From positions 137,682,737-137,746,736 of the forward strand of contig NC_052160.1 of NCBI RefSeq assembly GCF_902713615.1: 64,000 bases of DNA, in the 5' to 3' direction. The DNA comes from Scyliorhinus canicula. Taxonomy: Eukaryota. The notes beneath the pieces were generated by a model. It did no database searches. It was not told where the DNA came from and saw nothing but the letters and a program-made list of their open reading frames with translations. The position numbers were made by a program, and so were the translations under genes. Below are positions 8,221-58,395 of this stretch, in pieces. Position 1 is the first letter of the stretch, and each line of letters opens with the position of its first letter.

Positions 8221-8260
8221 ATGGCGTTCACTACGTTGCTGTTCCTCACTTTGGTATCAG
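8221..8260 (+). CDS. Gene A exon 1, signal peptide MAFTTLLFLTLVS
   Basis: ACCATGG Kozak context, hydrophobic 13 codons plus one base, donor AG|GTAAGA (phase 1). Paralogous to 23327 and 49030. Confidence 0.85.
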
Positions 8261-8557
8261 GTAAGATTTCCTTATTCTACATTTGGATTAACAGCTCACG
8301 TTTATGTCGGATGCTCAGCTCATACTTTTCAGTGTGGTTCTTGCAGTATAAGGGTCTGGTACACACAGGATTGAGGTGGAAGTGAATCCAGTACCGCCCC
8401 CATAGCGATTTTTCTTTTAAATGTCATTCCTTTCTCAGAGTCACAAAGCCAAAGTGCAGTGTGAAAGGGGCGCGCCCCTAATCCATCTCCTTGCTTGCTC
8501 TGAAAACCAATTCGAATTGAACCCAATTCATGGTCCCCACGGAAGGGGCATACTCCT

Positions 8558-8730
8558 GAGACTGGTTTAGCACAGTGGGCTAAACAGCTGGCTTGTCAGG
8601 CAGAACAAGGCCAGCAGCCCGGGTTCAATTCCCGTACCGGCCTCCCCGGACAGGCGCTTGAATGTGGCGACTAGGGGCTTTTCACAGTAACTTCATTGAA
8701 GCCTACTTGTGACAATAAGCAATGGTTATT
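8558..8730 (+). mobile_element. Short tRNA-head SINE (second family)
   Basis: GGTTTAGCACAGTGGGCTAAA...GGTTCAATTCC head and TGTGGCGACTAGGGGC...GTGACAATAAG tail, repeated elsewhere in the window (for example 59085-59265, minus). Confidence 0.7.
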
Positions 8731-9619
8731 AGATTCGATGACAAGAGAAGGCATTGCACCCAATTTCGGGCTTGATCCTACGCTCGATCCTAGCCAAGTG
8801 GCACAGTGATGACCCAGGTCCGAGGGTCAGTGCAGAATTGAGCAGCAACATATACAGACCTAAGCCTAGAGTCAGATCCTAGCCTAAACCCTTTACTGTA
8901 AATGTGTAAATAGTCCTAGTAGTTAATAAAGACTTATAGTTAACCAACGGAAGATTATCGAGACTTCTTTAAAACATACCGTTCTGTAACCAGCACTTTC
9001 CCAACAGTGTTGCCTTTGAAGCTACATCACAAAAAGGAGAAGCTTTCTTTGTCGACTCAAGTCATTATAATGGTTCTACCAATCAATTGGATAATGAAAT
9101 ACAGATTACTCCTGGTTTGGAGTAGGAGAGCCACAAAAGTCCACAAATCTCACACTGATTGGCTTCACATATTCCCGGCACCTTTTACTGGGTCCACCTC
9201 TGCTGGTTTCCATGTCTCAGTTCTCAAGTCATATGTGTCACCTTGCTCAGTAAAACGAACCTTCAGATTCCCAATGTCCCCATGACAATGACAGAGGACT
9301 AATGGGCGCTTCATTTTCTAGATGCATAGCCCAGTGTCTCGTGGTTACCAACCACACAAATGTCCCCAAAGTACAATGGAATTCACAGACTGACTTTCAC
9401 ATTAATGAAAAGGCAGAACGTGCTGGAGAAACCATCAGGTCCAGCAGAGAGGCACTACACAGATTCCAGAACTGGTAGGTCCTTAGGAGGTAAAGCAAGC
9501 AGTGTGCTTCCAGCAGGAATTCCACATCGATCCAGGAAACAAAGCCACGTGGGGGGTTCTACATGAGTTACCTGGCCTCCAATTCTAGCAGGGTGGCTCT
9601 CTTGTTCGCCCCGCTATTT

Positions 9620-9925
9620 CGCCCCGCTATTTCGGCCAGAGATCTTGGGAGTCAAGGAGCACATACCAGGCCGATTGCTGCACTTTGTGAATGTCTTCTC
9701 TCCCCTGGCTGACCAGCAGCAAAGTGAGCGAGTGTCCACTCATCTCGGTTCCATCGACCTGGGCGAATACACTGTTCTTGGGGGTGGGAGATTTCAGCTG
9801 CCCCCTCAAGGCCAGGGACTGCTTTGGAACCCTGCGCCACATGCCAGTGATGGAGAAGTTGAGGGACCAGGTCGGGTCCCTCAACCTGGTGGATGTCTGG
9901 CGACATCTCCATCCTGACTTACATG
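9620..9925 (+). mobile_element. LINE AP-endonuclease fragment (L1/Tx1-like)
   Basis: Reads GDFSCPL...LNLVDVWRHLHPD, resembling the GDFN and DxWR endonuclease motifs. Confidence 0.55.
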
Positions 9926-10539
9926 AGACCTGGACTTGGAGTGTGCTGAATAGACCGGCTTTACATTTTGAAGGCGTACATTTCAGGTGTAGGGAGCATC
10001 TGTGGAAGGGAAGAGAGAGCTAACATTTCAGGTTGAAGACCTGCAACAGGTTTTAAGTAAATACAATGGTCGGGGCAGGGGAAGGACAGGAAGGAACATC
10101 AAGAGCAGGTTTGTGAAGGAAGGAGAAATTAAGGACAAAAGCGAAGACGACGTGGGGAAATAGGAAGTTGGTAGCAGAACAAGCAACGGAATTAAAGAGG
10201 GAGTAAGAGGAGCTTTAGATGGCAATGGCAGGAACATTACCAACAGCTGCCATCTGAAGATAGGGGAGCAATAGTTCCGATCTTAAGTAATTGAATTCAC
10301 TGCTGAGTTTGTGAGCCTAATTTGATGAAAGGTCACTGACCTGGATTGTTAACCCTGTCTCTCTCTGCACAGGTCTCGCCAGCCCCATTGAATTCTTCCA
10401 GCATTTCTTGTTCTTATTTCGGTTTTATCAGTATTTTGTTTTTTGACTTTAACTCGGACAAATTGCAGAAAATGCTGGATAAACTCAACAGGTTTGGCAG
10501 CATCTGTGGAGCGAGACAGAGGGTGCACATTAACGAAAG

Positions 10540-11747: not shown

Positions 11748-12340
11748 AGCACTGTTGCTTCACAGCTCCAGGGTCCCAGGTTCGATTCCCGGCTTGAGTC
11801 ACTGTCTGTGTGGCGTCTGCACAATCCCCCCGTATCTGCGTGGGAGTCGTCCGGGTGCTCCGGTTTCCTGCCACAAGTCCCAAAACACGTGCTTGCTAGG
11901 TGAAATGGACATTCTGAATTCTCCCTCCGTGTACCCGAACAGGCGACTAGGGGATTTTCACACTAACTTCATTGCAGTGTTAATGTAAGCCTACTTGTGA
12001 CAATTAATTTTCTAAGAGGGCAGCACGGTGGCACAGTGGTTAGCACTGCTGCTTCTCAGCGCCAGGAACCAGGGTTCGATTCCGACCTTGGCTGACTGCC
12101 TGTGTGGAGTTTGTACATTCTCCCCGTGTCCGCGTGGGTTTCCTCAGGGTGCTCCAGTTCCCCCCTCAGCCCAAGGATGTGCTGGTTAAGTGGATTGGCC
12201 ATGCTAGACTGCCCTTAGTGTCCGAAGATGTGTAGATTGGGTTGTGGGGAGAGGGCGGGGGAATGGGCCTAGGTAGGATGCTCTTTCAGTGGGTTGATGC
12301 AGACTTGATGGACCAAATGGCCTCCTCCAGCACTGTAGAG
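11748..12340 (+). mobile_element. Two adjacent V-SINE copies (11748-12004; 12018-12340)
   Basis: Two tRNA-like heads, each followed by the conserved central domain. Confidence 0.8.
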
Positions 12341-12514
12341 ATACCTCCATTGATATAATACTAGCTGGACAGGCCGAATGGCCTCCTTCTCTGCTTTAAG
12401 GTTCTTGATTCCAGTCCCACTCAGGATTTGTGTGTGTCCCCTTGTGAAAGGATTGTCTAAAATTGATTGTTGGGATATTTCCAGCTTTCCTAAACTTAAT
12501 GTTTCCCCCAACAG

Positions 12515-12844
12515 CTTCACAGACACAGACGGCTTCGATAGTGGTGAAAGCTGCAGTGGGAGAAACCATCACAGTGGGATGTCCACAGGCAGAAAGGTAC
12601 AAAAGAAACAATGTCATCTGGTGGTGCAAGGCAACTTGGGGAAGTGGGTGCGATCATATATCGAGCATTGATGGGCAGAAAGTCAGAAACGATTATCGAG
12701 GAACATCGATTACTGATACCAATGGCAAGATTTCAGTAACCATACAACACCTTGAAGAGAAAGATACTGGAACATACTGGTGTGGACCAGGAGATAAACA
12801 CACATTCAATGTTTTAGATATTGTATTGCTGAAGGTTTTCACAG
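12515..12844 (+). CDS. Gene A exon 2, V-type Ig domain D1
   Basis: Acceptor CCCCAACAG| and donor CAG|GTAAGA, 330 nt, phase 1-1. Translation includes VGC...IWWCKATWGSGC (CX7C)...DTGTYWCG. Confidence 0.93.
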
Positions 12845-13545
12845 GTAAGAATATTTCAGAAGATTGATTCTAGCGTTGATAATGTGGTTGGGCTGCAGTA
12901 ACATTGCTGCTGTGTGAGCTCAGACTACGAAAGGATTATCACAGCTCCTTATGTGCAAGTAAAGACCCCCCATCCTCCCATTTCTACCCATTTCCATCTC
13001 TAAACATACTTCCCCCTCACACATCGACAAACCTAACATCAAATTCCACCAATGCCTCTTTTTAAAAAATTATTTTAAAGTATGTGAGCGTTGCTGGCTA
13101 GGCCAGTATTTATTGCCCCTCCCTACGTATCCCTGAGAAGGTTGTGGTGAGCTGCCTTCTTGAAACTCTGCAGTCCACGTGGTGCAGGTACTATCAGATT
13201 GTTGTTAAGGCAGGGAGTTCAGGATTTTGATCCAGCGACATCGAAGGAACGGCGATGTAATTCCAGGTCAGGCTGCTGAGTGACTTGAAGAGGAGCACGC
13301 AAGTGGTGGTGTTGCCATACACCTGCTTCCCTTGTCCTTCTCGGTGAAAGGGGGAGCAAGTTTGGAAGGAGTGAGTCGCTGTGTGTAACCACAGTAGAAA
13401 TCTCTAATAGTTGCCAAATCAATAGTTGCCTTCTGCAACACAATGGCGTCAATTGGTTAAAACTAGTTGGAGGTTGTTTTATTGGAATTACGTTTAGCAT
13501 AATTTGCATTCAACAGCATTCATTTGCACTTATTTACAAAATAAG

Positions 13546-13930
13546 TCTACAAGTTTACAAAAGGTCTATAAAATTATGAGGGGCATAGACAGAGTGGACG
13601 GTCAGAGACTTTTTCCCAGGGTAGAGGGGTCAATTACTAGGGTATATAGGTTTAAGGTGCGAGTGGCAAGGTTTAGAGGAAATGTACGAGGCAAGTTTTT
13701 TACACAGAGGGTAGTGGGTGCCTGGAACTCGCTGCCGGAGGAGGTGGTGGAAGCAGGGACGATAGTGATGTTTAAGGGGCATCTTGACAATACAAGAATA
13801 GGATGGGAATAGAGGGATACGGAGCCCGGAAATGTAGAAGATTTTAGTTTAGATGGGCAGCATGGTCGGCACAGGCTTGGAGGGCTGAAGGGCTTATTCC
13901 TGTGCTGTACTTTTCTTTGTTCTTTGTTAT
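13546..13930 (+). mobile_element. CR1 LINE 3' end
   Basis: YKIMRGIDRVD..KFFTQRVVGAWNSLPEEVVEAG followed by the CR1 3' UTR and a TTCTTTG tail. Confidence 0.85.
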
Positions 13931-14094
13931 TTGATATCAATTGTGCTCAAAAGCATTCAGATATCATTTGCCATTGTAAATAGTGATCAACAGGCATCAT
14001 TATCATCAATTGCCAATAAACTGCATTGCTCAAACATTGCTGATTACTTAGTTGAAGCATTAGTTGAAAAATTATTTAGTTGAAGCATTATGCG

Positions 14095-14480
14095 AGCATA
14101 TGAAATAGGCAGGAAAGTTGGCCATTCGGCCCCTCGAACCTACTCTGCCATTCAATAAGACCATTGCTGCTCTGTTTGTATTTTGAATTCCACATTCCCA
14201 TCTACTCCCAATAACCACTGATACCCTTCCCTAACAAGAAACAATCTACCTCCACCTTAAAAATATTAAGTGTACCCCGTATTCCCCTGGCTGCTGAGGC
14301 AAAGAGTTCCAAAGTTGCACAACCCTCTGCGAGAAGCAGAATTCTCCTCATCGCTGTCCGAAAACGATGTCCCCCTTATTCTAAAACAGTTGCCCCCTAA
14401 CTCTGGACTCACCCACAAGAGGAAACATCCTTTCCACGCCCACTTTGTCATGACCACTCAGGATCATTGTATACTTCAAT
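14095..14480 (-). mobile_element. CR1 LINE 3' end, reversed
   Basis: Reverse complement of a CR1 C-terminus and 3' UTR (GGCCATTCGGCCC...CACAACCCTCTG). Confidence 0.7.
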
Positions 14481-15400
14481 CTAAACGTCAGTGGAAACAA
14501 ACACACACCGTCTCTCCAACAATCTGAAACCAAAACTGATCAGAGAGTTTATTCTCCCAGTTTCTGAATTACCATTGCTTCAATCACCTGAAAGAGGAGC
14601 TAGCTTGAGAAAAAGTAGATGCTGTTTCAACATATGTTTTTATAAGATAGTTTTATGTTTTTCTGCCAAATGTATGACTAATACAGCAGTGCCCCCATTA
14701 CCCCAGATTGTAGCAGCTTTCTTTCCCCACATGTAATTTTACCCTACCTCTTCTCAAAAATCCCACCTCACAGATTGCAACAGTTTTCATCACTCCTCCC
14801 TCTCTTACCCAACTCCTCCTCCCCCTTGCCCTGTCCCCTCCTTCTCCCTCTCTACCCCCCTCTCCTCTCTCCACCTCCACTGAGCCTTTCCCCCTCGTTC
14901 CCTCCTTCCCCTCCACCCATCCCACCCCCACTTGTCTCTCTGCCTCTCCGCCCCTCCACGCTCTGCTGAAGATATCCAGGCAACGTGGAGCAACAATGGC
15001 TGCACAAATGTGGTGTGTGCTCGGGTTGGGGAGGTCAGGGGTGAAGAGAGTCAACAGTGGCATCCCGGGCTCGAGGTTTGGCAGCATCTGGAGAGGCAGC
15101 AAAAGCTGGCCCGAAACCGGTTGTGGTGGGTGCAGGCCAGAGACTGGAGATGGTGGAGGAGGGAGTGGAGTGGAAGGGAAGAACCAGGGGCACCAAGACG
15201 CATACGTATCATCCTGCACCCTGCATGCTTTCTTCCGAAGATGACATAAATAAATTAAGAACCAATGGGAATCTGGTGATGCTCTCAAGCATACATTATG
15301 GGATGGGTTTTTTTCGACTAAATGAAAAAATACATAAATTCAGATATTATTTCAGTAATTAATTTCCTTGTGTTTTTTGATTTCGATTCTGAGCATATTT

Positions 15401-15565
15401 GATGCCTTTGAGCGTGGTTGATGCCTTTGAGCGTGGTTGATGCCTTTGAGCATGGTTGATGCCTTTGAGTGTGGTTGATGCCTTTGAGCGTGGTTGATGC
15501 CTTTGAGCGTGGTTGATGCCTTTGAGCGTGATTGATGCCTTTGAGCATTGTTGATGCCTTTGCGC
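15401..15565. repeat. 19-bp minisatellite GATGCCTTTGAGCGTGGTT, ~9 units, in gene A intron 2
   Basis: Units start at 15401, 15420, 15439, 15458, 15477, 15496, 15515, 15534 and 15553. Confidence 0.93.
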
Positions 15566-16570
15566 ACCTTTTGCCTTCTAGCTCCTTTGATTACATTTCA
15601 TTACAAAACATTGTTGTCCGCATAAAAAACACATTCCAAATTAAAACGCTTGTTGTCAAATGAGCGCTGGTCATTTTTGAGCGCAAAGAATAATGTCAAC
15701 ACTTTCTGGTAGGGTTTCAACCCAGTGGCTAAAATCTGAAATCATTCAAATCCATCCACTTACAAAAGGTTAAAATCAGACCCAATGGTTCTAGCAATGC
15801 AAACTAAAACTCAAACTGCTTAATGTGCAACCAGAACTATACTCCGTCCCTTCCCTGTGTAACAGGCCTGGTGTTGGATGTAATTCAAACACTAAGGAAC
15901 ATCGGCCCAGAGGTGGATACAGTTGGTTCTGGGCAATAGCATAAAATGGCTATTCACAAATTGCCAGCTCAATTCTTAAACTTCTTTTTTTCCCCCATTC
16001 GACTTTAACTGCAATACTCCAATCATGAACGTAGAGGAGCCCTACATAGTCCACTTTGAACTCAGTGTGCAACATCTTAGCTCATTCAAACCCATCCAAC
16101 TACATAGGGTTAAACTCAGGCCCAATGATTCTGGCGATGAAAACTGAAACTCCTTTTGACCTACAAGTAACAAACTCACATTGTTTGTATATTTTTAGTG
16201 TTTATCCAAAGCGATGCTCAGTTTGTGTCCAACAGGCTTGGAGTTGGGGTCCCTTCATCGACTTTGAAAATTCACCCGAACGTTCTGAGCAATTTCACTG
16301 CAGCTACAGAAATAGAAATGGTTCACTAAATGTAGACCCACACACCTATGAAATATTAAATTAAAGGTTTAGAACGAGCAGGAATTGAACGCAGGAGCTT
16401 TCAATGATTACAGTGCATTTTACACTATAATCCAGTCCGTACATTAAAAACAGAAAATAATTTTGACATTTTCAACATTTGGCTGGTTCATTATATTTTG
16501 AGCAATGAAAAGATGCTCAGTTTTTCAGCATTTGGAACTTTTATTGATTGTGTTTCTCATTTATCAACAG

Positions 16571-16897
16571 GTACATGGGAGCCAATTGTATCAGAGATCA
16601 GTGGTGTTGTGGGAAATGTCACCACTGTACCATGTCTGTACACGGAGGAGGAGAAATACTATAAGAAATTCCTGTGTAAAGTAACCTCTATAAATAAATG
16701 CACCATTATTGCCAGCTCTGATGGGGCTGTAAACAATCTGCAAAATGGGAGTGTTTCAATCACTATTAATAATTCTCATAATTTTACTGTTACCCTGGGC
16801 AACATTAATAAAGCTGATGAAGGAGAGTACTGGTGTGGAGCAGTGACAGTAAAGAACATAAAGATCATCCAGGTAAAACATCTGACAACTGCTGAAG
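16571..16897 (+). CDS. Gene A exon 3, V-type Ig domain D2
   Basis: Acceptor ATCAACAG| and donor GAAG|GTAAGG, 327 nt, phase 1-1. Translation includes VPCLY...KFLCKVTSINKC (CX7C)...DEGEYWCG. Confidence 0.93.
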
Positions 16898-17736
16898 GTA
16901 AGGGTCAGTATAAAATTATTATCATTCAATCAGTGTTGAATATAACTTACAAAACAATAACAATTGGTCAATGCTGAGTTCTTTATTTACACATTGCGGC
17001 CACCCTACTTCATCTCAACCTTTCAGCACATCCTTCTCTTACTTTCCCCCTCGCTAAGTTTAGCTCAATTTCCCCCGAAGAGCATCTATGAAATTTGTCA
17101 CAATTACACCTTGTGGTACAGGTAGAACGTCTCAGATCCGCTGACCAAAAAAACAACAGTGTCCGTCCACAAACCAGACATTTTTAGGATGCTCAAGGCA
17201 CCAATTTTAACTGAGTGAAATTTTTGAAAAAACACACTGGACAACTTGGCTAGGTGCCACGTTGGCACGATGTGGCTCCAGACTAGATACTGGCTTCACC
17301 ATCCACTCTATCCGCCTCTCCATATGATCCTTACACCAGCTGACCCGGCCTCACATGAACCACCCGTGGCCTGGACTGCCCACCCTGCACCCCAGCAAGA
17401 TCTGAAAGCCATCACTGGATTGGAGGTACTGTCCCTAGTTCCACATTTAACAAGTTCCAGCTTCTATCAGCTCTCTGGGTATAGTGTCCAAAACTTTCAC
17501 GAATACTACAAGAAAATATAAATGTTAAAAATAAATAGAGAGTTTGTGCGAATACCTCACAGATTATTGTCCTCCCAACACTATAAGCTCTTTGTGAAGG
17601 CCCCTCAGAATCTATTTTTTCCTGAGCTCAAAACACCCAGGTTCACTTTCCATAAGTACAGTACGTTGAAGGTAATAATGGTGGTGGTTGGCAATTATTC
17701 ATCAAATTATTCATTTATCTTTACTTCCAACAATAG

Positions 17737-17767
17737 GAAGATCAAGTATTTCCAACGATACCTCAAG
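17737..17767 (+). CDS. Gene A exon 4, 31-nt stalk micro-exon (GRSSISNDTS)
   Basis: AATAG| acceptor and AAG|GTAAGA donor, phase 1 to 2. This is the phase needed to join D2 to the TM exon. Paralog at 35435-35465. Confidence 0.75.
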
Positions 17768-18690
17768 GTAAGATTTTAATTTGCAACTTCTAAATATCAA
17801 TTTTGTGCCACCCTCATTGAAGCCACGGTTGTTAGATAATCCTGCTTTCCTCACAGGTCATGATGAGCAATGCAATGTTATTAAATTACTATAATCCACG
17901 CAACCACCATATTGATGCCATATATTTCCTCATAATTCTGCCATTGATTGTCTTCCCATTTAATACAAACATATCGAAGCCAGGGGGCGACGTTTTTCAG
18001 ACCTTGGCAGTAATCATTCGGTGCGATAATATGAGAGAGTGACATTAACACTTTCTGCTGATACGTTCCCTTACGGAACATCCGACACCCCAGCCCAGCG
18101 TTTATTCATTCACGGGATGTTGATGCTGCTGACAAACCCTCATTCATTGCCCATCCCTAATTGACCTTGATAAAATGTTGGTAAGCCACCACCTTTAACC
18201 CCTGCTGTCCATGTGATGTCAATACACCCACCTGTGTAGTTCGGTAGAGAGGGTTTTGACGCAGAAAAGGTGAAGGAATCATGATCCACTTACAGGTCAA
18301 GTTAGTGTGGTAGTTGAAAAGGTGAAGTTGAGGTGGTGCTGCTTTACCTGTTGTCCTTGTCTTTCCAACTGGTGATGGTCACAGGTTTGAAAGGTGTTAC
18401 TGAAGAAGCCTTAGAACACTGCTCTAATGCATCCTCAACAGAGAGATGCAGTCTCACCAGAACACAGCTCGTCCCTGCGCAATTCCTGTTAGAGATATTT
18501 TCCCCTGTGTACAAAGCCCAAAACTCCGAGGCATGACTACACTTTGAAAATCACCCCATAGCCTGTAAAAACTGTCAATGTGTTCAATATAATTTTCCAG
18601 AATTGTTGGGATGTTACTGATGGTCATTTTGCATAAACTGTGCGTTAATTTATTTTGTACTGTATTAATTATAATTCCTTGTTTAATCAG

Positions 18691-18797
18691 AGAGGTTCTG
18701 CTGAAGATATGGACTATATTCCGTTGGCTGCTCTTTGCGGCTCTGGCTGTTTGCTCCGCTTCAGTCACATTCTATGAACATTTTGCAAAAGGGCCAG
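18691..18797 (+). CDS. Gene A exon 5, transmembrane (REVLLKIWTIFRWLLFAALAVCSASVTFYEHFAKGP)
   Basis: TTGTTTAATCAG| acceptor and CAG|GTATAA donor, 107 nt, phase 2 to 1. Hydrophobic segment containing Arg. Confidence 0.8.
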
Positions 18798-19410
18798 GTA
18801 TAAAATATGAAATCTTTTTGCTCTAATATTTACAGATATTTAACTTCAGCCTAAAAACTCAGGCACTTGGAAAGTAGCCAAGAAAAACAACACATAATCC
18901 ACAAGAAATGAAGTTCTCTTCGTGAAAATGTAACAAGGGAGCCATTCGAGTGTGATAACAATGACCTTTGGGCTGAATTTTATGCTCGTCGACAGAAAGG
19001 ATAAAAATGTCAGTTCGTCAGGAGATTTTCATTTTTACGCGGGAGTGCAAAATGGGAAAAGTTGTGTAGACACTCAATGCAAAGCACTGTTTAATTAAAT
19101 TTTTATTTAAAATGCATACCTGTGTCCAATAGTGGCCTTGAACATGGGTAAGGGAGCATCAACAGTGCCCCTGGACCAGGCACAGTATGGTGCATTGTAT
19201 AACCTGGAACCCATGATGTGCCCCAGAGCTGTGGGCACCAGATGCAAAATAGGTTATTGCAAACAAACCTCAGCACTTACATCAGGATGTCTCCATCCAC
19301 ACTCTCACCTATTTTTTCGCCATGTATCGCTTGAAGTATTTCACTTACAGAAAGAAGGTCAATTCCTCTGTTTTCTTTATTACGATTGATTAAATTTATT
19401 TGTTATTCAG

Positions 19411-19430
19411 TTCTGCAGGCCAGCAAATGA
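19411..19430 (+). CDS. Gene A terminal coding exon (VLQASK*); an alternative acceptor at 19419 would give a 27-aa tail ending at 19501
   Basis: First AG after a T-rich tract. The same VLQASK* reading occurs in gene B. AATAAA lies ~220 nt downstream. Confidence 0.55.
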
Positions 19431-19648
19431 GGGGTTCTGTGGAAACATCAGCCAGAGAACATCAATGGGGTCAGAGAGAGCTGCATTCGAAGACCGGCTA
19501 GAAGGTTGACTAATACCTACACGAATGTCCAGAATATTTTCACCTTGCTTTTATAAGTTACTTTACCGTTTTGCAGTATTTTTATTCTTTATGACAATCT
19601 GAAAATCTTTGTAAAGTCTTGAGAAACTATGTGAACTGCTTTCATTAT

Positions 19649-19654
19649 AATAAA
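19649..19654 (+). terminator. Polyadenylation signal AATAAA, gene A
   Basis: Conserved at the homologous position in gene B (37599-37604). Confidence 0.6.
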
Positions 19655-20508
19655 AACAACTGGATGATAACATTTCTTGATGTTTTTGATATTAAGGGGC
19701 AGTGGATGCCGGAACACGATCCAAATTTGAGGAGGAGATAGATAGGTTTTTAATTAGTGGTGGAATGAAGGATTATGGCAATGGGCAGGATGGTGGAGAT
19801 GGGGCCTGGACGAGATCAGCCCAGGTTTTTAGGGGAGGTGATGGTATAGTGGTATTGTCACAAGACTAGTAATCCAGAGACCTAGAGGTCTGGGATCCTG
19901 GGTTCCCACCACGGCAAATGGTGAAATTTGAATTCATCTGGAATGAAAAGTATAATGATGACCATGAAGCCATTGCCGATTGTCATAAAAACCCATCTGG
20001 TTCACTAAGGTCCTTCGGGGAAGGGAATCTGCCGTCCTTACCTGGTCTGGCCTACATGTGACTCCGGACCCACACAACAATGCTTCGCCCCTCAGTTCAA
20101 GGGCAATTAGGGATGGGTAACAAATGATGGCCCAGCCCAGCGACGCCCACATCCAAAGAGCGAATAAGAAAAAGTATTGAATGGTGGAGGGGTTGAATTG
20201 CCGACCCTTGCTCTTGGTTCCTATAGTCTTATGTTTGTGTCCTAATAAGTCAAATATGATTTCAGAAACTTTTATATGAACCCAGAATACATATTTAATG
20301 ATATCAATGCCTTCGTTGGGAATGACACACCTTGCTTGCAGAGGGGAAAAAATAGAATTTGGACTTTTTTTTAACATTGCTTTCCTTGTAAAGCAAGAGA
20401 AATGGGAGCTTACATTTGGTGCACTTATTCTATCATCCTCACATTAATTTTATATTGCAATTATCAGTAAACAGCCTTCCTTCTTTAAGCTTGGGGGAGT
20501 GATTCGGG

Positions 20509-20850
20509 ATGGCACGGTCACACAGTGGTTAGCACTGCTGCCTCACACCTCCAGGGGCCCGGCTTCAATTCCGGCCTCGAGTGGCGGTCTGTGTGGAGTC
20601 TGCATGTCCTCCCCGTGTCTGCGTGGGTTTCCTCCGGGTGCTCCGGTTTCCTCCCACAGTCCAAAGATGTGCAGGTTAGGTGGATTGGCCGTGCTAAATT
20701 GCCCCTTAGAGTCCAAACGGTTAGGTGAGGTTACTGGGTTATGGGGATCGGGTGGAGGCGTGGCCTTAAGTAGGGTGCTGTTTCCAAGAACCGGTGCAGA
20801 CTCAATGGGCCGAGTGGCCTCCTTCTGTACTGTAGGGATTCTGTGATTCA
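20509..20850 (+). mobile_element. V-SINE
   Basis: tRNA-like head, central domain and tail. It is an inverted homolog of 29047-29398 and 56942-57294. Confidence 0.8.
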
Positions 20851-23326: not shown

Positions 23327-23366
23327 ATGATTATTACTGCGTTGCTGTTCCTCACTTTGATATCAA
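23327..23366 (+). CDS. Gene B exon 1, signal peptide MIITALLFLTLIS
   Basis: AGCATGA start, 40 nt, donor AA|GTAAGA. Confidence 0.83.
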
Positions 23367-23439
23367 GTAAGATTTTCCAATTCTATATTTGGAGTAACAG
23401 CTCATGTTTATGTCTGAGAAAAATGGCACGACGTTTCTA

Positions 23440-24290
23440 TTTTTAAAATTCAGTTCGGGGATGTGGGTGCCGCTGGTTATGCCAGCATTTATGGCCCATC
23501 CCTAGCTGCCCTTCAGAAAGTGGTGGTGAGCTGCCTTCTTGAACCGCTGCAGTCTGGGTGTAGGTACACCCACTGTGCTGTTCGGGAGGGAGTTCCAACG
23601 ACAGTGAAGGAACAGCGATCTATTTCCTAGTCAGGATGGTGAGTAACTTGGAGGGGAACCTCCAGGTCGGGGGGGGGGGGGGGGGTGGTTCCCAGGTATC
23701 TGCTGCTCTTGTCCTTCTGGATGGTAGTGGTCGTGGATTTGGAAGGTGCGATCTAAGGAACCTTGGTGAGTTACTGAGGTGCATCTTGTAGATGGTACAC
23801 ACGGCTGCCACTGTTCGCGGTGGTCGAGGGTTTGAATGTTTGTGGAAGGGGGAGCAATCAAGCGGGGCTGCTTTGTCCTGGATGATGTTGAGCTTATTGA
23901 GTGTTGTTGGAGCTGCGCTCACCCAGACAAGTGGTGAATAAGCCATGGGGACGTCACGGGGTCCAGAGTCGATGTTGAGGACTCCCAGGGCAACTCCCTC
24001 CCGACTGCATACCACTGTACCACCACCTCTGCTGGGTCTGTCCTGCCGAATAGACAGGACATTCCCAGAAATGGTAATTGTGCAGTCTGTGACATGGGCT
24101 GTAAGATATGATTCTGTGAGTATGACTATATTAGGCTGTTGTTTAGCTAGGCTGTGAAAGAGCTCTCCCAACATTGGCACAAGCCCCCAGATGTTAGTAA
24201 GGAGGAACTTGCAGGGTCGGCAGAGCTGGGTTTGCTGTTGTTGTTTCCGGAGCCTGGTTCGGTGTTGGGCAGCTGTCGGGCAGTCCGCCC
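23440..24290 (-). mobile_element. Internally deleted CR1/L2-group LINE (endonuclease joined to 3' end)
   Basis: Minus ORF QPNIVILTESYL..RQDRPSRGGG is fused to AAPTTLNKLNIIQDKAA..YKMH. The 3' part is shared with gene C intron 1 (49140-49790). Confidence 0.7.
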
Positions 24291-24292
24291 AT

Positions 24293-25207
24293 TTTTAGCA
24301 ATATATATATATATATATATATTTAGCAGTATATATATATATATATTTAGCAGTATATATATATATTTAGCAGTATATATATATATATATTTAGCAGTAT
24401 ATATATATATATTTAGCAGTATACATATATATATATTTAGCAGTATATATATATATTTAGCAGTATATATATATTTAGCAGTATATATATATATTTAGCA
24501 GTATATATATATATTTAGCAGTATATATATATATTTAGCAGTATATATATATTTAGCAGTATATATATATATATTTAGCAGTATATATATATATTTAGCA
24601 GTATATATATATATTTAGCAGTATATATATATATTTAGCAGTATATATATATTTAGCAGTATATATATATATATATTTAGCAGTATATATATATATATAT
24701 TTAGCAGTATATATATATATATATTTAGCAGTATATATATATATTTAGCAGTATATATATAATTATATTTAGCAGTATACATATATATTTAGCAGTATAT
24801 ATATATTTAGCAGTATATATATATATTTAGCAGTATATATATATATATTTAGCAGTATATATATATTTANNNNNNNNNNNNNNNNNNNNNNNNNNNNNNN
24901 NNNNNNNNNNNNNNNNNNNNNNNNNNNNNNNNNNNNNNNNNNNNNNNNNNNNNNNNNNNNNNNNNNNNNNNNNNNNNNNNNNNNNNNNNNNNNNNNNNNN
25001 NNNNNTATATTTAGCAGTATATACATATATATATATTTAGCAGTATATATATATATTTAGCAGTATATATATATATATATTTAGCAGTATATATATATAT
25101 ATTTAGCAGTATATATATATATTTAGCAGTATATATATATATATTTAGCAGTATATATATATATATTTAGCAGTATATATATATATTTAGCAGTATATAT
25201 ATATATT
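24293..25207. repeat. TTTAGCAG(TA)n minisatellite containing/adjoining assembly gaps (N at 24870-25005 and 25208-25343)
   Basis: Directly visible ~20-26 bp units. One further unit lies at 26221-26245. Confidence 0.95.
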
Positions 25208-25343
25208 NNNNNNNNNNNNNNNNNNNNNNNNNNNNNNNNNNNNNNNNNNNNNNNNNNNNNNNNNNNNNNNNNNNNNNNNNNNNNNNNNNNNNNNNNNNNN
25301 NNNNNNNNNNNNNNNNNNNNNNNNNNNNNNNNNNNNNNNNNNN

Positions 25344-26220
25344 TCGCGTCTTTTCGTCCGACGTCACTTCGTCCAACGACACTTCGTCCACGACTTTTGG
25401 TCCAACGTCTTTTTGTCCGCCCGTCTTTTGGTCCAACGTCACTTCGTCCAATTATCCAATTACAAATTAACTCCGTATAAAACCATTTAATTGATAAAAT
25501 GCAAGTACAATACAGCAAGTGAATTTAATTCCTAAAATGCAAGTAATTGATAAAATGCAAGTAAAATGTAAGTTGAAAAATGCAGTTAAAAAGTTAAAAA
25601 ATCTAAAAATGCAGTTAAAAAATCTAAAAGTTTACTAATTACTTAAAATTCCCGAAATTACTTAAAATTGATGTAAATTGTAAATTCCCGAAATTCCCTA
25701 AAAGTTAGAGAACTGTACCCGAGAGAGAATAATGGGGAGAGGACAAGATGATTTGATATTCTACAATTCCGACAGACACAGATATAAGTGGGAGTCTAAT
25801 TGGATTTAGACAATGAGTGCAGTTCTGAAAGAAGCAGATTTAAACTCGATTTTCGTCGAGTGATTAAAACCTCTGGTTGGCAGTGGGTTCTGACATTACA
25901 GGTCTGAAATGATCAAATATTCCATCAGATACAATGGCTCTCATCACGCTGGAGCATACATGGGTGAATATCCTGCAGCTTATCTTAATAATGTCTGGAG
26001 ATCAAGCAGCACAAATGCAGAATTCAACCTCAAGAGGCGAAATAGGTGGAGAGGATCCTTGAGCAGTAACATTGAAAAACTAAATTAAACTATTTGTAAT
26101 TGGATAATTGGACGAAGTGACGTTGGACCAAAAGACGGGCGGACAAAAAGACGTTGGACCAAAAGACGTGGACGAAGTGTCGTTGGACGAAATGACGTCG
26201 GACGAAAAGACATAGCACCA
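25344..26220. mobile_element. Foldback-like non-autonomous DNA transposon with ~120-bp terminal inverted repeats
   Basis: 25348-25467 is the reverse complement of 26092-26211, with two mismatches by eye. The TIRs are built of GGACGAA/GGACCAAAA/GACGT sub-repeats and enclose a ~620-bp non-coding interior. Confidence 0.85.
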
Positions 26221-26299
26221 TTTAGCAGTATATATATATATATTTTAAGGGCCTAACGGGTGTTTAATCTTTTTTTTCCTTTTAAAGCTCTTTGGGAAT

Positions 26300-27700
26300 T
26301 CAAATCAGAGGGGATGGAAGCTAGGGCAGTTACCAGCTCCTCCTGTAGGATGTGGATGGTGATTACACCAGCCGGATGTGCACCCAACTCCAGCTCCTCA
26401 GAGACCGCGTTAGGGAACTGGAGCTAGAGCTGGATGAACTTCGGATCATCCGGGAGGCAGAGGGGGTGATAGAGAAGAGTTACAGGGAGGTAGCCACACC
26501 CAAGGTGCAGGACAAGAGTAGCTGGGTTACACTCAGGGGAAGGAAAAGGAACAGGCAGACAGTGCAGGGATCCTTCGTGGCCGTTCCCCTTCAAAACAAG
26601 TATACCGTTTTGGATGCTGTTGGGGACCTACCGGGGGAAGGCCCAAGCAGCCAGGTCTCCGGCACTGAGCCTGGGTCTGTGGCCCAGAAGGGAAGGGGAA
26701 GAATAGAAAAGCAATAGTGATAGGAGCCTCAATGGTTAGGGAAACGGGTAGGAGATTCTGTGGTCGCGAACGAGACTCCCGGAAGGTATGTTGCCTCCCG
26801 GGTGCCAGGGTCAGGGATGTCTCGGATTGAGTCTGCAGGATTCTGAAGGGAGAGGGGGAGCAACCAGAAGTCGTAGTACACATAGGCACCAACGACACAG
26901 CTAAGAAAAGGGATGAGGATCTAAAAAGGGAGTTAGGTTGGAAGCTAAAGAGCAGGACAAGCAGAGTACTGATCTCAGGATTGCTACCGGTGCCACGTGC
27001 AAGTGAGGCAAGGAACAGAGAACGAGTGCAGCTGAACACATGGCTACAGGGCTGGTGCAGGAGGGAAGGCTTCAGATATGTGGATCATTGGGAGATCTTC
27101 TGGGGAAGGTGGGACCAGAACATGAAGGACGGATTGCACCTAAACTGGAGGGGGCACCAATATCCTGGGTGGGAGGTTTGCTCGAGCTCTTCGGGAGGGT
27201 TTAAACTAGTTTGGCAGGGGGATGGGAACCAGAGCTATGGATCAGAGGATAGGGTAGCTGTTGAATGGGCTGAAATAGTATGCAGCAAGTCTGTGAGGAA
27301 GGATAGACAGTTGATAGGGCAAAGTTGCACTCAGTGGAATGGGTTAAAGTGTGTCTGTTTCAATGTAAGAAGTGTCAGGAATAAGGGAGATGAACTCAGA
27401 GCATGGATCAGTACTTGGAACTATGATGTGGCCATTACGGAGACATGGATTTCACAGCGGCTAGAATAGTTGTTCGATGTTTTGTGGTTTAGATGTTTTA
27501 AGAAGAATAGAGAGGGAGGTAAAAGAGGAGGGGGAGTGGCACTGTGAATTCGGGAGTGCACCACACTGCAGAAAATGTGGTAGTGGAGGAAGGTTTGTCT
27601 TCTGAGTCAGTATGGGTGGAAGTCAGAAACAAGAGAGGAGCAGTCACTTTATTGGGAGTTTTCTATAGACCCCCCAATAGCAGCAGTGAGATGGAGGAAC
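26300..27700 (+). mobile_element. CR1 LINE 5' half: ORF1 (coiled coil plus SGNH esterase-like) and start of ORF2 endonuclease; degenerate
   Basis: LRDRVRELELELDEL, HIGTND, WCRREGFRYVDHW..DGLHLN, then FNVRSVRNKGDEL..AITETW. Confidence 0.88.
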
Positions 27701-27867
27701 AGAACTATCTGACCAAAGGATTGTAGAAACAGCAGTCAATTGGTTAAGATGAGGCAGCTACAATCAGGACACACATGCAGTAACATAAATTTGCAGAGTG
27801 TAAGTCCTGTCGCCCAACAGACTGGGAAGTCCAATTCTGTCCAGGATTGCAGAGTTAAACTTCCTTT

Positions 27868-28069
27868 TTCATTTTTTTCCAATTAAGGGGCAATTTAGCG
27901 AGGCCAATCCACCTACCCTGCACATCTTTGAGTTGTGGGGGCGAAACCCACGCAAACACGGGGAGAATGTGTAAACTCCACACGGACAGTGACCCGGAGC
28001 CGGGATCGAACCTGGGTCCTCAGCGCCCTGAGGCCACAGGGCTAACCCACTGCGCCACCGTGCTGCCCC
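27868..28069 (-). mobile_element. V-SINE (short form)
   Basis: Reverse complement of head GGGCAGCACGGTGGCGCAGTGGG and central domain. Confidence 0.8.
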
Positions 28070-29046: not shown

Positions 29047-29398
29047 GCCGTTGAATCACAGAAGCCCTACAGTGCAGAGGGAGGCCATTCGGCCCATTGA
29101 CTCTGCACCGGTTCTTGGAAACAGCACCCTACTTAGGGCCACGCCTCCACCCTATCCCCACAACCCAGTATCTCACCTAACCTTTTGGACACTAAGGGGC
29201 AATGTAGCACGGCCAATCCACCTAATCTGCACATCTTTGGACTGTGGGAGGGAACCGGAGCACCCGAAGGAAACCCACGCAGACACGGGGAGAATGTGGC
29301 AAACTCCACAGAGACAGTCACCCGAGGCCGGAATTGAACCCGAGCCCCTGGAGATGTGAGGCAGCAGTGCTAACCACTGTGCGGCTGTGCCATCCCGA
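29047..29398 (-). mobile_element. V-SINE
   Basis: Reverse complement of a full SINE, homologous to 56942-57294. Confidence 0.8.
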
Positions 29399-29459
29399 AT
29401 CACTCCCCCAAGCTTAAAGAAGCTGATAATTGCAATATAAAGTTAATGTGAGGATGATT

Positions 29460-30070: not shown

Positions 30071-30180
30071 TCTTGAGACCGGTCCCACTCAGGATTTGTG
30101 TGTGTCCCCTTGTGAAAGGATTGTCTAAAATTGATTGTTGGGATATTTCCAGCTTTCTTAAAACATGTTTCACCCAACAG

Positions 30181-30510: not shown

Positions 30511-30682
30511 GTAAGAATGTTTCAGAAGATTGATTCTAGCGTTGATAATGTGGTTGGGCTGCAGTAACACTGCTGCTGTGTGAGCTCAGACTATGAAAGG
30601 ATTATCACAGTTCCTTATGTGCAAGTAAAGGCCTCCCATCCTCCCATTTCTATCCATTTCCATTAACCTCTCTAAACATAGG

Positions 30683-49804: not shown

Positions 49805-51445
49805 CCGGGGCATTGCCGTGTCCGGGGCATTGCCGTATCCGGGGCATTGCCGTATCCGGGGCATTGTCGTGTCCGGGGCATTGCCGTGTCTGGGGCATTG
49901 TCGTGTCCGGGGCATTGCCGTGTCCGGGGCATTGCCGTTTCCGGGGCATTGCCATGTCCGGGGCATTGCCGTGTCCGGGGCATTGCCGTATTTGGGGCAT
50001 TGCCATTTTTGGGGCATTGCCGTTTCCGGGGCATTGCCGTGTCCGGGGCATTGCCGTGTCCGGGGCATTGTCGTGTCCGGGGCATTGTCGTGTCCGGGGG
50101 CATTGCCGTGTCCGGGACATTGCCGTGTCCGGGGCATTGCCGTGTCCGGGGCATTGCCGTGTCCGGGGCATTGCCGTGTCCGGGGCATTGCCGTTTCCGG
50201 TGCAATGTCGTTTCCGGGGCATTGCCGTTTCCAGTGCATTGCCGTGTCCGGGGCATTGCCATTTCCGGGGCATTGCCATTTCCGGGGCATTGCCGTGTCC
50301 GGGGCATTGCCGTTTCTGGGGCATTGCCGTGTCCGGGGCATTGCCGTGTCCGGGGCATTGCCGTGTCCGGGGCATTACCGTGTCCGGGGCATTGCCGTGT
50401 CCGGGGCATTACCGTGTCCGGGGCATTGCCGTTTCCGGGGCATTACCGTGTCCGGGGCATTGCCGTTTCCGGTGCATTGCCGTGTCCGGGGCATTGCCGT
50501 TTCTGGGGCATTGCTGTGTCCGGGGCATTGCCGTGTCCGGGGCATTACCGTGTCCGGGGGCATTGCCGTGTCCGGGGCATTGCCGTGTCCGGGGCATTGC
50601 CGTGTCCGGGGCATTGCCGTGTCCGGGGCATTGCCATTTCCGGGGCATTGCCGTTTCCGGGGCGTTGCCGTGTCCGGGGCATTGCCGTGTCCGGGGCATT
50701 GCCGTGTCCGGGGCATTGCCATTTCCGGGGCATTGCCGTTTTTGGGGCATTGCCGTTTCCGGGGCTTTGCCGTGTCCGGGGCATTGCCGTGTCCGGGGCA
50801 TTGCCGTTTCCGGGGCTTTGCCGTGTCCGGGGCATTGCCGTGTCCGGGGCATTGCCGTGTCCGGGGCATTGCCGTGTCCGGGGCATTGCTGTGTCCGGGG
50901 CATTGCCATGTCCGGGGCATTGCCGTTTCCGGGGCATTGCCGTTTCCGGGGCATTGTCGTTTCCGGGGCATTGCCGTGTCCGGGGCATTGCTGTGTCCGG
51001 GGCATTGCCATGTCCGGGGCATTGCCGTGTCTGGGGCATTACCGTGTCCGGGGCATTGCCGTGTCCGGGGCATTGCCATGTCCGGGGCATTGCCGTGTCC
51101 GGGGCATTGCCGTGTCCGGGGCATTGCCATGTCCGGGGCATTGCCGTGTCCGGGGCATTGCCGTGTCCGGGGCATTGCCGTTTCCGGGACATTGTCGTTT
51201 CCGGGGCATTGCCGTGTCCGGGGCATTACCGTGTCCGGGGCATTGCTGTTTCCGGGACATTGTCGTTTCCGGGACATTGTCGTTTCCGGGGCATTGCCGT
51301 GTCCGGGGCATTACCGTGTCCGGGGCATTGCCGTTTCTGGGGCATTGCCGTTTCCGGGGCATTGCCGTTTCCGGTGCATTGCCGTGTCCGGGGCATTGCC
51401 GTTTCCGGGACATTGTCGTTTCCGGGGCATTGCCGTGTCCGGGCC
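49805..51445. repeat. 17-bp GC-rich minisatellite CCGGGGCATTGCCGT(G/T)T, ~95 units, in gene C intron 1
   Basis: Directly visible. The 17-bp period explains the long repetitive ORFs in all six frames. Confidence 0.96.
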
Positions 51446-55583: not shown

Positions 55584-55704
55584 CCCTTCAAACCCATTAC
55601 CAATTAAAAATCTGTCTAACCCCTCCTTAAATTTACTCCAGTATCTGCATCCACCGCACTCTGGGGTAGCGAATTCCACAGATTCACAACCCTTTGGGAG
55701 AAGT

Positions 55705-56935
55705 AGGGTGGAATTCTCCCCCCCCCCCCCCCCCCCCCCGCCACGCCGCCACGGCACCCGCACGCGATTCTCCCACCCCCCCCCCCCCCAAACCGGCATG
55801 GCGAGATTCACGGCTGGCCGCTGGGAGAATCGGCGCTCACCGTTTGTAGCGAGCGAGCGGCGATTCTCCGGCCCGGATGGGCCGAGCGGCTGCCCCAACA
55901 TGACAGGTTCCCGCCGCCGCCGTCCTCACCTGGTCGCTGCCGGCGGGAACAGCGCGGGAACACTGGGGGGGGCAACCTGTGGGGGGGGGGGGGGTCCTCA
56001 AAAGGGGTCTGGCCCACGATTGGTACCCACCAATCGGCGCGCCAGATCTCTGAAGGAGGACCTCCTTTCCTCTGCCGCCCCGCAAGATCCATCCGACATC
56101 TTCTTGCGGGGCAGACGCGGGGAGGTTGCACTCGCACATGCGCGGGTGACGTAATTTACACGGCGCAGCCGCGTCATTTATGCGTGCAGGGCCTTGGCAT
56201 CGCGTAAATGACGCTGTGCTGCTCCTCGCCCCCCCGGGAGCGGGAGAATAGGGGGCTGGGAGCCGCCAGGAAATGCACCTCGCATTTTGAAATACTGGTC
56301 CGATCTTTCTGCCCCCGCCCTGCACACTTTCAGCCTTCCCCCCCCCCCCCCCCCACTCCTTTTCACCCTTCTAACCCCAACGTTGGGGAGGTCATTGGAA
56401 ACACCCTGTCACCCCTCCTCCACCTGGTAAGGCTCCACTGGGCCTGATCGCCATCAGTGTCAATCTGCTACCTGGACACGCTGGTACTGCCAGCCTGGCA
56501 CCCAGGCAGCGGCAAGATGGCATTGCCAAGGTGCCAGGGTGGGAGGGTCAAGGTGACAGGCTAGCAGAGGGAGTTCCAGGGTATCACCCTGCCCTGCCCC
56601 CAACCACCCAGGGGTCTCTAATGGCTGGGAGCAGCCACCCACCCCCCCCCCCCCCCCCGCCCCCACCACCCCACCCCGGGTCTGTTTTGCCTGATCCACG
56701 TTTGTGGAAACCAGCTCTAAATGGCGTCCTGACGAAGATCTCCCAGGAGTGGCCGTTACATCCCGAGTGCTGGGAGAATCCGGCAATCGCCTAATGGCTC
56801 ATTTAAATATACCGATCTGGGTCACGCGCAGCGAGAGCGAGATCCAGATCGCGACGTCTCGTGAGATTCCGTTGTTTCCAGCGTCGTAAATCTCACGAGG
56901 GGCCTCTCGCAGGATTCAACGGCCTTTTTGGGCCC
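55705..56935. mobile_element. Adjacent MITE-like elements
   Basis: GGAATTCTCC-type end. 56270-56930 matches 28340-29040. Confidence 0.55.
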
Positions 56936-56941
56936 AACAAG

Positions 56942-57294
56942 GCCGCTGAATCACAGAAGCCCTACAGTGCAGAGGGAGGCCATTCGGCCCATTGACTCTG
57001 CACCGGTTCTTGGAAACAGCACCCTACTTAAGGCCACGCCTCCACCTTATCCCCACAACCCAGTAATCTCACCTTACCTTTTGGACACTAAGGGGCAATT
57101 TAGCACGGCCAATCCACCTAATCTGCACATCTTTGGACTGTGGGAGGAAACCGGAGCACCCGGAGGAAACCCTCGCAGACACGGGTCGAATGGGGCAAAC
57201 TCCACAGAGACAGTCACCAGAGGCCGGAATTGAACCCGAGCCCCTGGAGATGTGAGGCAGCAGTGCTAACCACTGTGCGGCTGTGCCATCCCGA
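56942..57294 (-). mobile_element. V-SINE (paralog of 29047-29398)
   Basis: Near-identical sequence and flanks. Confidence 0.8.
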
Positions 57295-58065
57295 ATCACT
57301 CCCCCAAGCTTAAAGAAGCTGATAATTACAATATAAAGTTAATGTGAGGATGATTTTTGAATTTTAAATAAGAGTAATAAATGCAAAGTGAGGAGTTATG
57401 TTAACCCTTCACTACTCACTGGTTAGGTACTGTGTTCAACTCTGGGCAACACACTTGAGGGATGAGATCAAGCCCCTGGCGAGGGCACAGGACAGATTTA
57501 CCAGGATGATACCAGGGATGTGGCAGTTTGGATTTGTGGGCAGATTGGAGACATTGGGATTATTCTCCTTAGAGCAGAAAAGATTAAAGGGAAAAAAGTA
57601 TTGAAATTGAGGAAGGGTCTTCTGCAGCAAGTGGAGAGTAATTATTTCCTACGGCTGGTGGATTGGTAACAAGAGATCATAGAGTTAAAATAGTTGGGAG
57701 AAAAAACAGTGGGTAAATGAGGAGACGTTATTTCACACATTAGGCTGTTATCATCTGGAAAACACCACCTGGAATAATCATGGAATGAGATTCCAGAGGA
57801 ACTTTCCAAAGGCAGATAGACATACATTTGAAGGGGACCAATGTGCAGGGTTTCGGGGGGGAGCTGGGGTGTGGGATTAAATTGGACAATAAATTTTCCA
57901 GGAGCTGGCACAGACATGACGGGCCGAATGGCCTCCTTCTCTGCTTTAAGGTTCTTGATTCCAGTCCCACTCAGGATTTGTGTGTGTCCCCTTGTGAAAG
58001 GATTGTCTAAAATTCATTGTTGGGATATTTCCAGCTTTCCTAAAACTTAATGTTTCCCCCAACAG

Positions 58066-58395
58066 CTTCACAGACACGGACGGCTCCGATAGTGATGAGA
58101 GCTGCAGTGGGAGAAACCATCACAGTGGGATGTCCACAGGCAGAAAGGTACAAAAGAAACTATGTCATCTGGTGGTGCAAGGTAATTTCAGGAACTCGGT
58201 GCGATCAGATATCGAGCATTGATGGACAGACAGTCAGAAACGATTATCGAGGAACATCGATTACTGATACCAATGGCAAGATATCAGTAACCATACGACA
58301 ACTTGAAGAGAAAGATACAGGAACATACTGGTGTGGGCCACATGATAATGGTGTAACCCATATTTCAGATGTTATATTGCTGAAGGTTTTCACAG
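58066..58395 (+). CDS. Gene C exon 2, Ig domain D1
   Basis: CCCCCAACAG| acceptor and CAG|GTAAGA donor, 330 nt, open. IWWCKVISGTRC..DTGTYWCG. Confidence 0.92.

Follow-up and report, generated by a model that had tools for sequence, protein, structure and literature searches.

The CD300 family has a paired design of activating and inhibitory members, and in the mouse it includes MAIR-I and MAIR-II (which we take to be CD300a and CD300d), and mammalian CD300 members can carry Glu as the charged residue of their transmembrane (TM) segment. For elasmobranchs, a point of comparison is the skate MDIR family, reportedly described by Cannon et al. in 2006. MAIR-I carries the hexamer VEYSTL, which resembles an ITIM (immunoreceptor tyrosine-based motif for inhibition), and MAIR-II has a charged TM segment and a tail of 20 amino acids (aa) and binds DAP12 (PMC2194075). 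A second disulfide motif, C-C′, is common to CD300, TREM, NKp44 and PIGR (bioRxiv 10.1101/2022.04.21.489081). A survey published in 2014 found no PIGR homologs in sharks (PMC4016189). Here we analyze a stretch of 64,000 nucleotides (nt) from the small-spotted catshark Scyliorhinus canicula (contig NC_052160.1, positions 137,682,737 to 137,746,736, forward strand), referred to below as the window and numbered from its first letter. The window covers a portion of a tandem array of catshark genes that were duplicated recently; within it lie two genes in full and the 5′ half of a third unit. These genes very probably form an array of activating receptors of CD300/pIgR type, each with two V domains, that belongs to a paired-receptor family.

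The composition of the window is that of vertebrate DNA (GC 49%, CpG observed/expected 0.50), and the initial annotation, made from the letters alone, had correctly recognized a cartilaginous-fish host and a tandem cluster of receptors with two immunoglobulin (Ig) domains. In a self-BLAST comparison, the block of ~0.6 kb that holds the first Ig domain exon (D1) appears in three copies (12368-12997 versus 30036-30663 and 57918-58667, ~91%), and the block of ~4.2 kb from the second Ig domain exon (D2) to the gene end appears in two (16109-20304 versus 33657-38261, 85-96%). Leader exons begin at 8221, 23327 and 49030. Each is a 40-nt coding exon with a phase-1 end on GTAAG, and aligned with their upstream flanks the three have a mean column identity of 87%. 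A tblastn search with domain-sequence queries recovered exactly three D1-type and two D2-type exons within the window and no others. The inventory given earlier stands in full: three leaders, three D1 exons, the third of which ends at 58395, and the D2, stalk, TM and tail exons in two full sets. The open frames of 284 aa stand as well. With exon borders set from sequence, the six-exon chains of genes 1 and 2, all on the + strand, have AG/GT at all internal splice sites, join their small exons in compatible phases (1-1-1-2-1) and encode 284 aa each. The chain of gene 1 is identical to the RefSeq model XP_038675786.1, and that of gene 2, which spans an assembly gap, is identical to XP_038675788.1.

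In gene 1, the leader exon (8221-8260) contains the ATG, encodes MAFTTLLFLTLVS and ends in a phase-1 GT donor, and an RNA contig from run X4 joins it to the D1 acceptor (loose end 12512). The D1 exon (12515-12844; Pfam V-set E 2e-11) encodes Cys36/Cys103 and Cys51-x7-Cys59, and the D2 exon (16571-16897; Pfam V-set E 3.4e-11) encodes Cys145/Cys212 and Cys159-x7-Cys167; runs X1 and X4 both contain the RNA joint 12844>16571 that connects the two exons, and its ends are GT..AG. The join from D2 to the 31-nt stalk exon (17737-17767; RSSISNDTS, with an N-x-S/T sequon) is represented by RNA contig loose ends at 16898 and 17735. In run X2 a loose end at 17767 continues into the first bases of the 107-nt TM exon (18691-18797; EVLLKIWTIFRWLLFAALAVCSASVTFYEHFAKGP). 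This exon encodes KIWTIFRWLLFAALAVC, including Arg254, which falls in a helix at residues 240-275 of the AlphaFold2 (AF2) model. The coding part of the tail (19411-19430) contributes VLQASK, with the stop at 19428-19430. Because loss of the 107-nt TM exon shifts the frame, TM-exon skipping would yield a soluble form of 272 aa. The skipped form reads through to a stop at 19499-19501, a position that agrees with the RefSeq coding sequence (CDS) range, and its product is exactly RefSeq isoform X2 (XP_038675787.1).

Gene 2 has the same layout. Its leader exon (23327-23366; MIITALLFLTLIS) is contained in XP_038675788.1, and its D1 exon (30181-30510; Pfam V-set E 8.5e-10) is matched by gene-2-specific RNA contigs with 0-1 mismatches. 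The D2 exon (34123-34449) is bounded by the RNA joints 30510>34123 and 34449>35435, both with GT..AG ends; the second of these, found in runs X1 and X4, runs into the gene-2-specific stalk (35435-35465, 31 nt, RPNGSNDTS). The Arg-containing TM exon (36390-36496; ...FRWLLFAAMAVCSASVTCYAHFAKGP) and the coding part of the tail (37366-37385; VLQASK and the stop) complete the chain. Intron 1 (23367-30180) contains an AT-rich minisatellite with a 20-bp period and two N runs (24310-25343 together, without strand; minisatellite proper 24310-25207, N runs 24870-25005 and 25208-25343). The N runs interrupt no exon or reading frame, and only the length of this intron is uncertain. RNA contigs in which a gene-2/3-type leader (…TTTGATATCAA) is spliced to a gene-2/3-type D1 (loose end 12515; other letters at 12544 and 12548) cannot be assigned to the copy in the window as opposed to near-identical copies elsewhere. 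Since they fit those copies too, continuity from the gene 2 leader to its D1 across the gap is likely rather than proven. Two open reading frames (ORFs) in introns of gene 2 (26981-27469 and 31194-31727) have weak matches to a GDSL-type esterase and to GIY-YIG, and we read them as remnants of a CR1/L2-type ORF1 and a Penelope-like element.

The RNA evidence consists of Logan contigs of RNA runs from several studies with coded tissues, placed on 12400-18399 and 29900-35899. Of the splice junctions that had been predicted, leader-D1, D1-D2, D2-stalk and stalk-TM all have RNA contigs, and TM-to-tail comes from the RefSeq models. In run X2, depth over the exons exceeds that over the introns by a factor of tens to hundreds. 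Contigs across the D1>D2 joint match genes 1 and 2 almost equally well, and paralog-specific RNA contigs cover both genes at high depth. Genes 1 and 2 are complete, expressed genes. The earlier suggestion that their short exons could have left them unannotated or mis-annotated did not survive comparison with RefSeq, which has identical 284-aa models for both and at least four more paralogs. Searching with D2 brought up RefSeq proteins of S. canicula that carry the name "polymeric immunoglobulin receptor-like" and are 100, 95 and 91% identical to the query. The RefSeq cluster (XP_038675784, 786/787, 788/789/790, 791, 792 and 793) amounts to at least six paralogous genes, and its members all have 284 aa except for the 272-aa isoform 787. 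Public annotation already includes both complete genes, and the finding is real but not new.

The predicted proteins contain two V-set domains. All four D1 and D2 exons tested match Pfam V-set with E values from 3.5e-12 to 8.5e-10 (curated cut-off 26 bits). The B-F pairs are Cys36/103 and Cys145/212, and the extra pairs are Cys51/59 (WWC-x7-C) in D1 and Cys159/167 (FLC-x7-C) in D2. Both domains of genes 1 and 2 carry the Cx7C motif, as does the D1 exon of the third unit (D1-3), and the cysteine pairs align with the corresponding pairs of domains in the polymeric Ig receptor (pIgR), which bears out the assignment to CD300/pIgR-type V domains. Across 35 relatives there is no variation at C36, C103, C145, C159, C167 and C212 and almost none at C51. 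An AF2 model of gene 1 built on the alignment of these relatives (mean predicted local distance difference test, pLDDT, 81; predicted template modeling score, pTM, 0.69) has two beta-sandwich domains in addition to the helix. Searched with Foldseek, it finds human and teleost pIgR ectodomains at the top, followed by single-chain variable fragments, which also have two V domains. The TM motif W-x-x-x-R-W-[IL]-[LF] is conserved and embeds the Arg, and the tail (…YEHFAKGPVLQASK) contains neither an ITIM nor an ITAM (immunoreceptor tyrosine-based motif for activation). A TM segment with Arg and a short, motif-less tail correspond, as predicted from the protein sequence, to the design of an activating receptor.

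The fold matches bring up the question of whether these are true shark pIgR orthologs, that is, two-domain transcytosis receptors like teleost pIgR, whose soluble isoform would be the secretory component for polymeric IgM. The RefSeq label is pIgR-like and a Callorhinchus relative is labelled pIgR. Full-length matches in PDB and the AlphaFold DB are led by pIgR, including the two-domain teleost structure 5f1s, and tandem V-set domains with Cx7C are shared with both the five-domain pIgR of mammals and the two-domain pIgR of teleosts (bioRxiv 10.1101/2022.04.21.489081). However, the high scores of pIgR add up over five domains. Taken as single domains, the best PDB scores are 42-51 bits for CD300 proteins (CLM-6 51, CMRF35-H 42-48) against 26-33 bits for pIgR domains and, domain by domain, the catshark receptors are closer to CD300 than to pIgR. 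In addition, pIgR is single-copy with an uncharged TM and a long tail that carries sorting signals, whereas the catshark genes are multi-copy (three units in the window, at least six genes in RefSeq), have Arg254 in the TM, end in a tail too short for such signals and have sister genes that carry ITIMs. In the domain trees described below, moreover, the pIgR-like domains sampled from teleosts stay apart from the D1 and D2 clades of cartilaginous fishes. We therefore consider it very improbable that the array encodes transcytosis receptors.

The comparison with CD300/CMRF35-like receptors is closer. Shared features are a V-set domain with the extra C-C′ disulfide (the catshark Cx7C lies within the Cx6-9C spacing), a paired design in which a charged TM with a short tail is opposed to an ITIM tail, and a tandem multigene cluster. 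The hexamer VEYSTL of mouse MAIR-I is also found in inhibitory relatives of the catshark genes. There are also differences: CD300 proteins have a single Ig domain whereas the catshark proteins have two V-set domains, and the catshark TM charge is Arg, in W-x-x-x-R-W, rather than the Lys or Glu of mammals. Judging from domain similarity, the paired design and the tail motifs, these genes are probably CD300-like in the way they work, with the V domain doubled. The PIGRL/CMRF35-like genes of zebrafish and other cyprinids share two Cx7C V domains and multigene arrays with the catshark cluster, and teleost genes of this type are the nearest non-chondrichthyan matches in a word-indexed search (E 1e-21 to 3e-9), with an identity of only 22-33%. 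Their sampled domains belong neither to the D1 nor to the D2 clade of cartilaginous fishes, so they are not one-to-one orthologs.

Relatives found by profile search occur in sharks, rays and skates, are all automatically named pIgR-like and fall into two forms; an exhaustive profile search returned 3976 proteins at E ≤ 1e-3, with 129 at E ≤ 1e-30. The form with Arg in the TM and a short or motif-less tail is found in Scyliorhinus, Mustelus, Hypanus, Hemitrygon and Mobula. The form with an uncharged TM has a tail of ~85 aa with the motifs xTYSTV, xxYANL and SSESVEYSxLxF and is found in S. torazame, Mustelus, Carcharodon, Cetorhinus, Pristiophorus, Heptranchias, Pristis, Hypanus, Mobula and Amblyraja. 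The Callorhinchus "pIgR" has two domains and DILRWIFFGVLALC, a coelacanth pIgR-like protein has DVLRWILLAAMIAC, and paddlefish CMRF35-like molecules are isoforms of one gene that end in LYLRWILFVFMLAC or SSESVEYSVLAF. The Arg-TM motif is thus also present in Callorhinchus, Latimeria and Polyodon, and the SSESVEYSxL tail ending in Polyodon. Some relatives carry three Ig domains and, according to the domain tree, a duplicated D1. The initial annotation had called the family recently expanded and lineage-specific. The first part is correct for the tandem copies, but the D1-D2 layout also occurs in rays, skates and Callorhinchus, and the Arg-TM and ITIM tail in coelacanth and paddlefish relatives. 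Because the Arg-TM motif is common to relatives in sharks, rays, a chimaera, coelacanth and paddlefish, and other relatives carry an uncharged TM with ITIM tails, the paired-receptor family is old and its local duplications are recent; it is no invention of the catshark.

The genes could also be catshark members of the skate MDIR family and hence belong to an elasmobranch receptor family that has already been described. The MDIRs of the clearnose skate are a multigene family of activating and inhibitory Ig superfamily receptors with domains resembling CD300, TREM, FCAR and pIgR (PMC3031540, a secondary source). Yet neither a Raja eglanteria protein nor one named MDIR was among the matches of the searches with the family profile and with a skate member, and the literature that was searched yielded no description of a two-V-domain receptor family in sharks. 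We view membership in the MDIR family as a possibility to be kept in mind, though a rather doubtful one.

The trees place the duplications in time. The whole-protein tree follows the species tree, and inside a Scyliorhinus clade an S. torazame gene is grouped with gene 2 (87/80) and XP_038675784.1 with gene 1 (85/62). These pairings put the duplications in the Scyliorhinus lineage, and at least one of them may predate the split of S. canicula and S. torazame. In the domain trees, which are unrooted and have short columns, long branches and limited sampling, all D1 domains form one clade and all D2 domains another (99/98 and 98/99). When further taxa are added, the second domain of Callorhinchus joins the D2 clade (100/99) and its first domain the D1 clade (90/95), and the first coelacanth domain is sister to the D1 clade (91/83). 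Domains of teleosts, tarpon, paddlefish and the ray CLM5 lie outside both clades. A tree check for one-to-one orthology with an already described gene, which had been proposed along with the initial annotation, gave no such orthology with the sampled teleost two-domain pIgR-like proteins, whose domains lie outside the chondrichthyan clades.

The two domains differ in how fast they change. The D1 exons are 87.5-89% identical at the nucleotide level, below the flanking introns (~91-93%), and comparisons among D1 paralogs give nonsynonymous rates (dN) of 0.125-0.151, synonymous rates (dS) of 0.077-0.142 and dN/dS of 0.96-1.96. The D2 exons of genes 1 and 2 are 98.5% identical, and the five sites at which they differ are all nonsynonymous. 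Across seven catshark paralogs, 41 of 109 positions vary in D1 and 18 of 108 in D2, and the variation in D1 clusters in the C-C′ and F-G regions. These patterns suggest, but do not prove, diversification of D1.

The third unit is represented by an intact leader exon (49030-49069, + strand; MVFTALLFLTLIS) and a D1 exon (58066-58395, + strand; Pfam V-set E 3.5e-12) with an open frame, four Cys and AG/GT sites. The third gene claimed earlier is real to that extent, but it has no RefSeq model of its own and no sign of expression. Among the D1-3 31-mers that were sampled, a share of 0.26 or less is present in RNA runs, compared with ~0.6 in DNA-like runs. As exactly 26% of the D1-3 31-mers also occur in the D1 exons of genes 1 and 2, that share equals the overlap with those exons and is no sign of D1-3 transcription. 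One explanation is that at least unit 3, and perhaps others, are decaying duplicates, that is, pseudogenes or exon relics, with RefSeq isoforms across units arising as multi-mapping artefacts. The paralog-sharing level of D1-3 31-mers in RNA speaks for this, as does the lack of a gene call of its own at leader 3 or at D1-3. Introns and spacers filled with transposon insertions, and dN/dS values near or above 1, which are also expected under relaxed constraint, point the same way. On the other hand, genes 1 and 2 are intact at 284 aa with canonical splice sites and paralog-specific RNA contigs at high depth, D1-3 retains its open frame, its four Cys and both splice sites, and structural residues are all conserved across the family. 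Decay as an account of the array is improbable.

The annotation downstream of gene 2 bears on the fate of this unit. The RefSeq gene table lists CDS ranges in locus coordinates (locus coordinate = window coordinate − 13326, calibrated on the stop of gene 1 isoform X2 and the ATG of gene 2), and in it the range of gene 2 extends to about 72,616 while no gene starts at 49030. The TM exon of gene 2 isoform X2 (XP_038675789.1) differs from gene 2's own at three residues, and the D2 of isoform X3 (XP_038675790.1) is absent from the window. In RefSeq, the 3′ exons of unit 3 have thus become part of gene 2, whose isoforms X2 and X3 connect its 5′ exons with the TM exon of the following unit or with that unit's exons from D2 to TM; this could reflect either real cross-unit splicing or ambiguous mapping of paralog reads. 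A pattern of this kind suggests cassette splicing in the array: transcripts of gene 2 would bypass the 3′ part of that gene and use instead the exons for D2, stalk, TM and tail that follow in the next unit, whose leader and intact D1 would be silent, and one ectodomain could be switched between activating, inhibitory and soluble outputs. In Hypanus sabinus and Polyodon spathula, ITIM and Arg-TM forms with identical ectodomains are annotated as isoforms of one gene, which hints at alternative 3′ cassettes. That the array is in part such a cassette system seems unlikely at present; if it were true, the choice of activating, inhibitory or soluble output would be made by splicing across tandem units. 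A RefSeq read-through model of 792 aa overlaps another paralog locus. Because its leader peptide equals that of leader 3, XP_038675784.1 was considered as a product of unit 3. However, its D1 matches D1-3 at only 84% identity, and its neighbors are spaced otherwise than this location would require; it is located elsewhere and not in the window. In the D1 of this protein, Phe replaces the second Cys of Cx7C (…SGTRFNH…), and this domain would lack the extra disulfide.

Returning to the array as one of activating, CD300/pIgR-type receptors, each gene encodes a membrane glycoprotein of type I that consists, in order, of a signal peptide, two V-set domains, a glycosylated stalk of 10 residues, a TM helix with Arg and a short tail, and each V-set domain has the canonical B-F disulfide in addition to the C-C′ cysteine pair of Cx7C. 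These genes would be the activating halves of an old paired-receptor family. The TM Arg most likely recruits an ITAM-bearing adaptor of the DAP12 or FcR-gamma type, so that ligand binding would lead to leukocyte activation, and sister genes with the same type of ectodomain, an uncharged TM and two or three ITIMs would give the opposing signal. The membrane-distal D1, which diverges fast between paralogs, is the likely ligand-discriminating domain, with D2 being conserved. Judging by CD300, the foremost candidates for the ligand would be lipids or other surface molecules, whether self or microbial. Several points weigh against this proposal. The adaptor pairing, the cell type and the ligand are all inferred. 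There is no inhibitory (ITIM) exon within the window, and the searches recovered no inhibitory member from S. canicula, although its congener S. torazame has one. The TM-to-tail junction and the TM-skipping isoform come from RefSeq models. For D1, the variable positions are not significantly enriched outside strands or in loops (p = 0.55), and dN/dS reflects few substitutions and does not separate positive from relaxed selection.

It follows from the family's distribution that cartilaginous fishes have a well-conserved receptor family of CD300/pIgR type with paired activating and inhibitory forms. The two-domain layout dates back at least to the chondrichthyan ancestor, and the Arg-TM and ITIM cassettes are common to coelacanth and paddlefish genes. 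The family could serve as an anchor for the origin of the CD300, pIgR and Fc-alpha-mu receptor group and for paired signaling in early jawed vertebrates. The RefSeq label "pIgR-like" appears misleading because the genes read as something other than transcytosis receptors. As a discovery this is modest, because the complete genes were already modelled and the design is familiar; the added value lies in the age of the family, the misleading name and the status of unit 3.

The genes are surrounded by repeats. A degraded LTR/Gypsy-type (long terminal repeat) retroelement on the + strand (39355-43600), with ORFs for an aspartyl protease, reverse transcriptase-ribonuclease H and an integrase core, lies between gene 2 and leader 3. 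Two large minisatellites, one upstream of gene 1 (3690-5109; 25-bp G-rich unit, ~55 copies) and one in the intron between leader 3 and D1-3 (49804-51443; 17-bp unit TCCGGGGCATTGCCGTG, ~96 copies, 91% match), both give long spurious ORFs on both strands. Fragments of a long interspersed nuclear element (LINE) at 1-1613 and 61702-63299 are 76% identical by self-BLAST. The second copy comes with a reverse transcriptase ORF (RVT_1, E 2.7e-25; 61260-61850) and sits past D1-3, in the intron that follows it, at a place where one would otherwise look for D2. A repeat of ~320 bp, probably a short interspersed nuclear element (SINE), is present in six copies in both orientations with 76-83% identity (3314-3641, 12016-12342, 20512-20849, 29053-29382, 44568-44908 and 56948-57278), one of them ~170 bp upstream of the D1 exon of gene 1.

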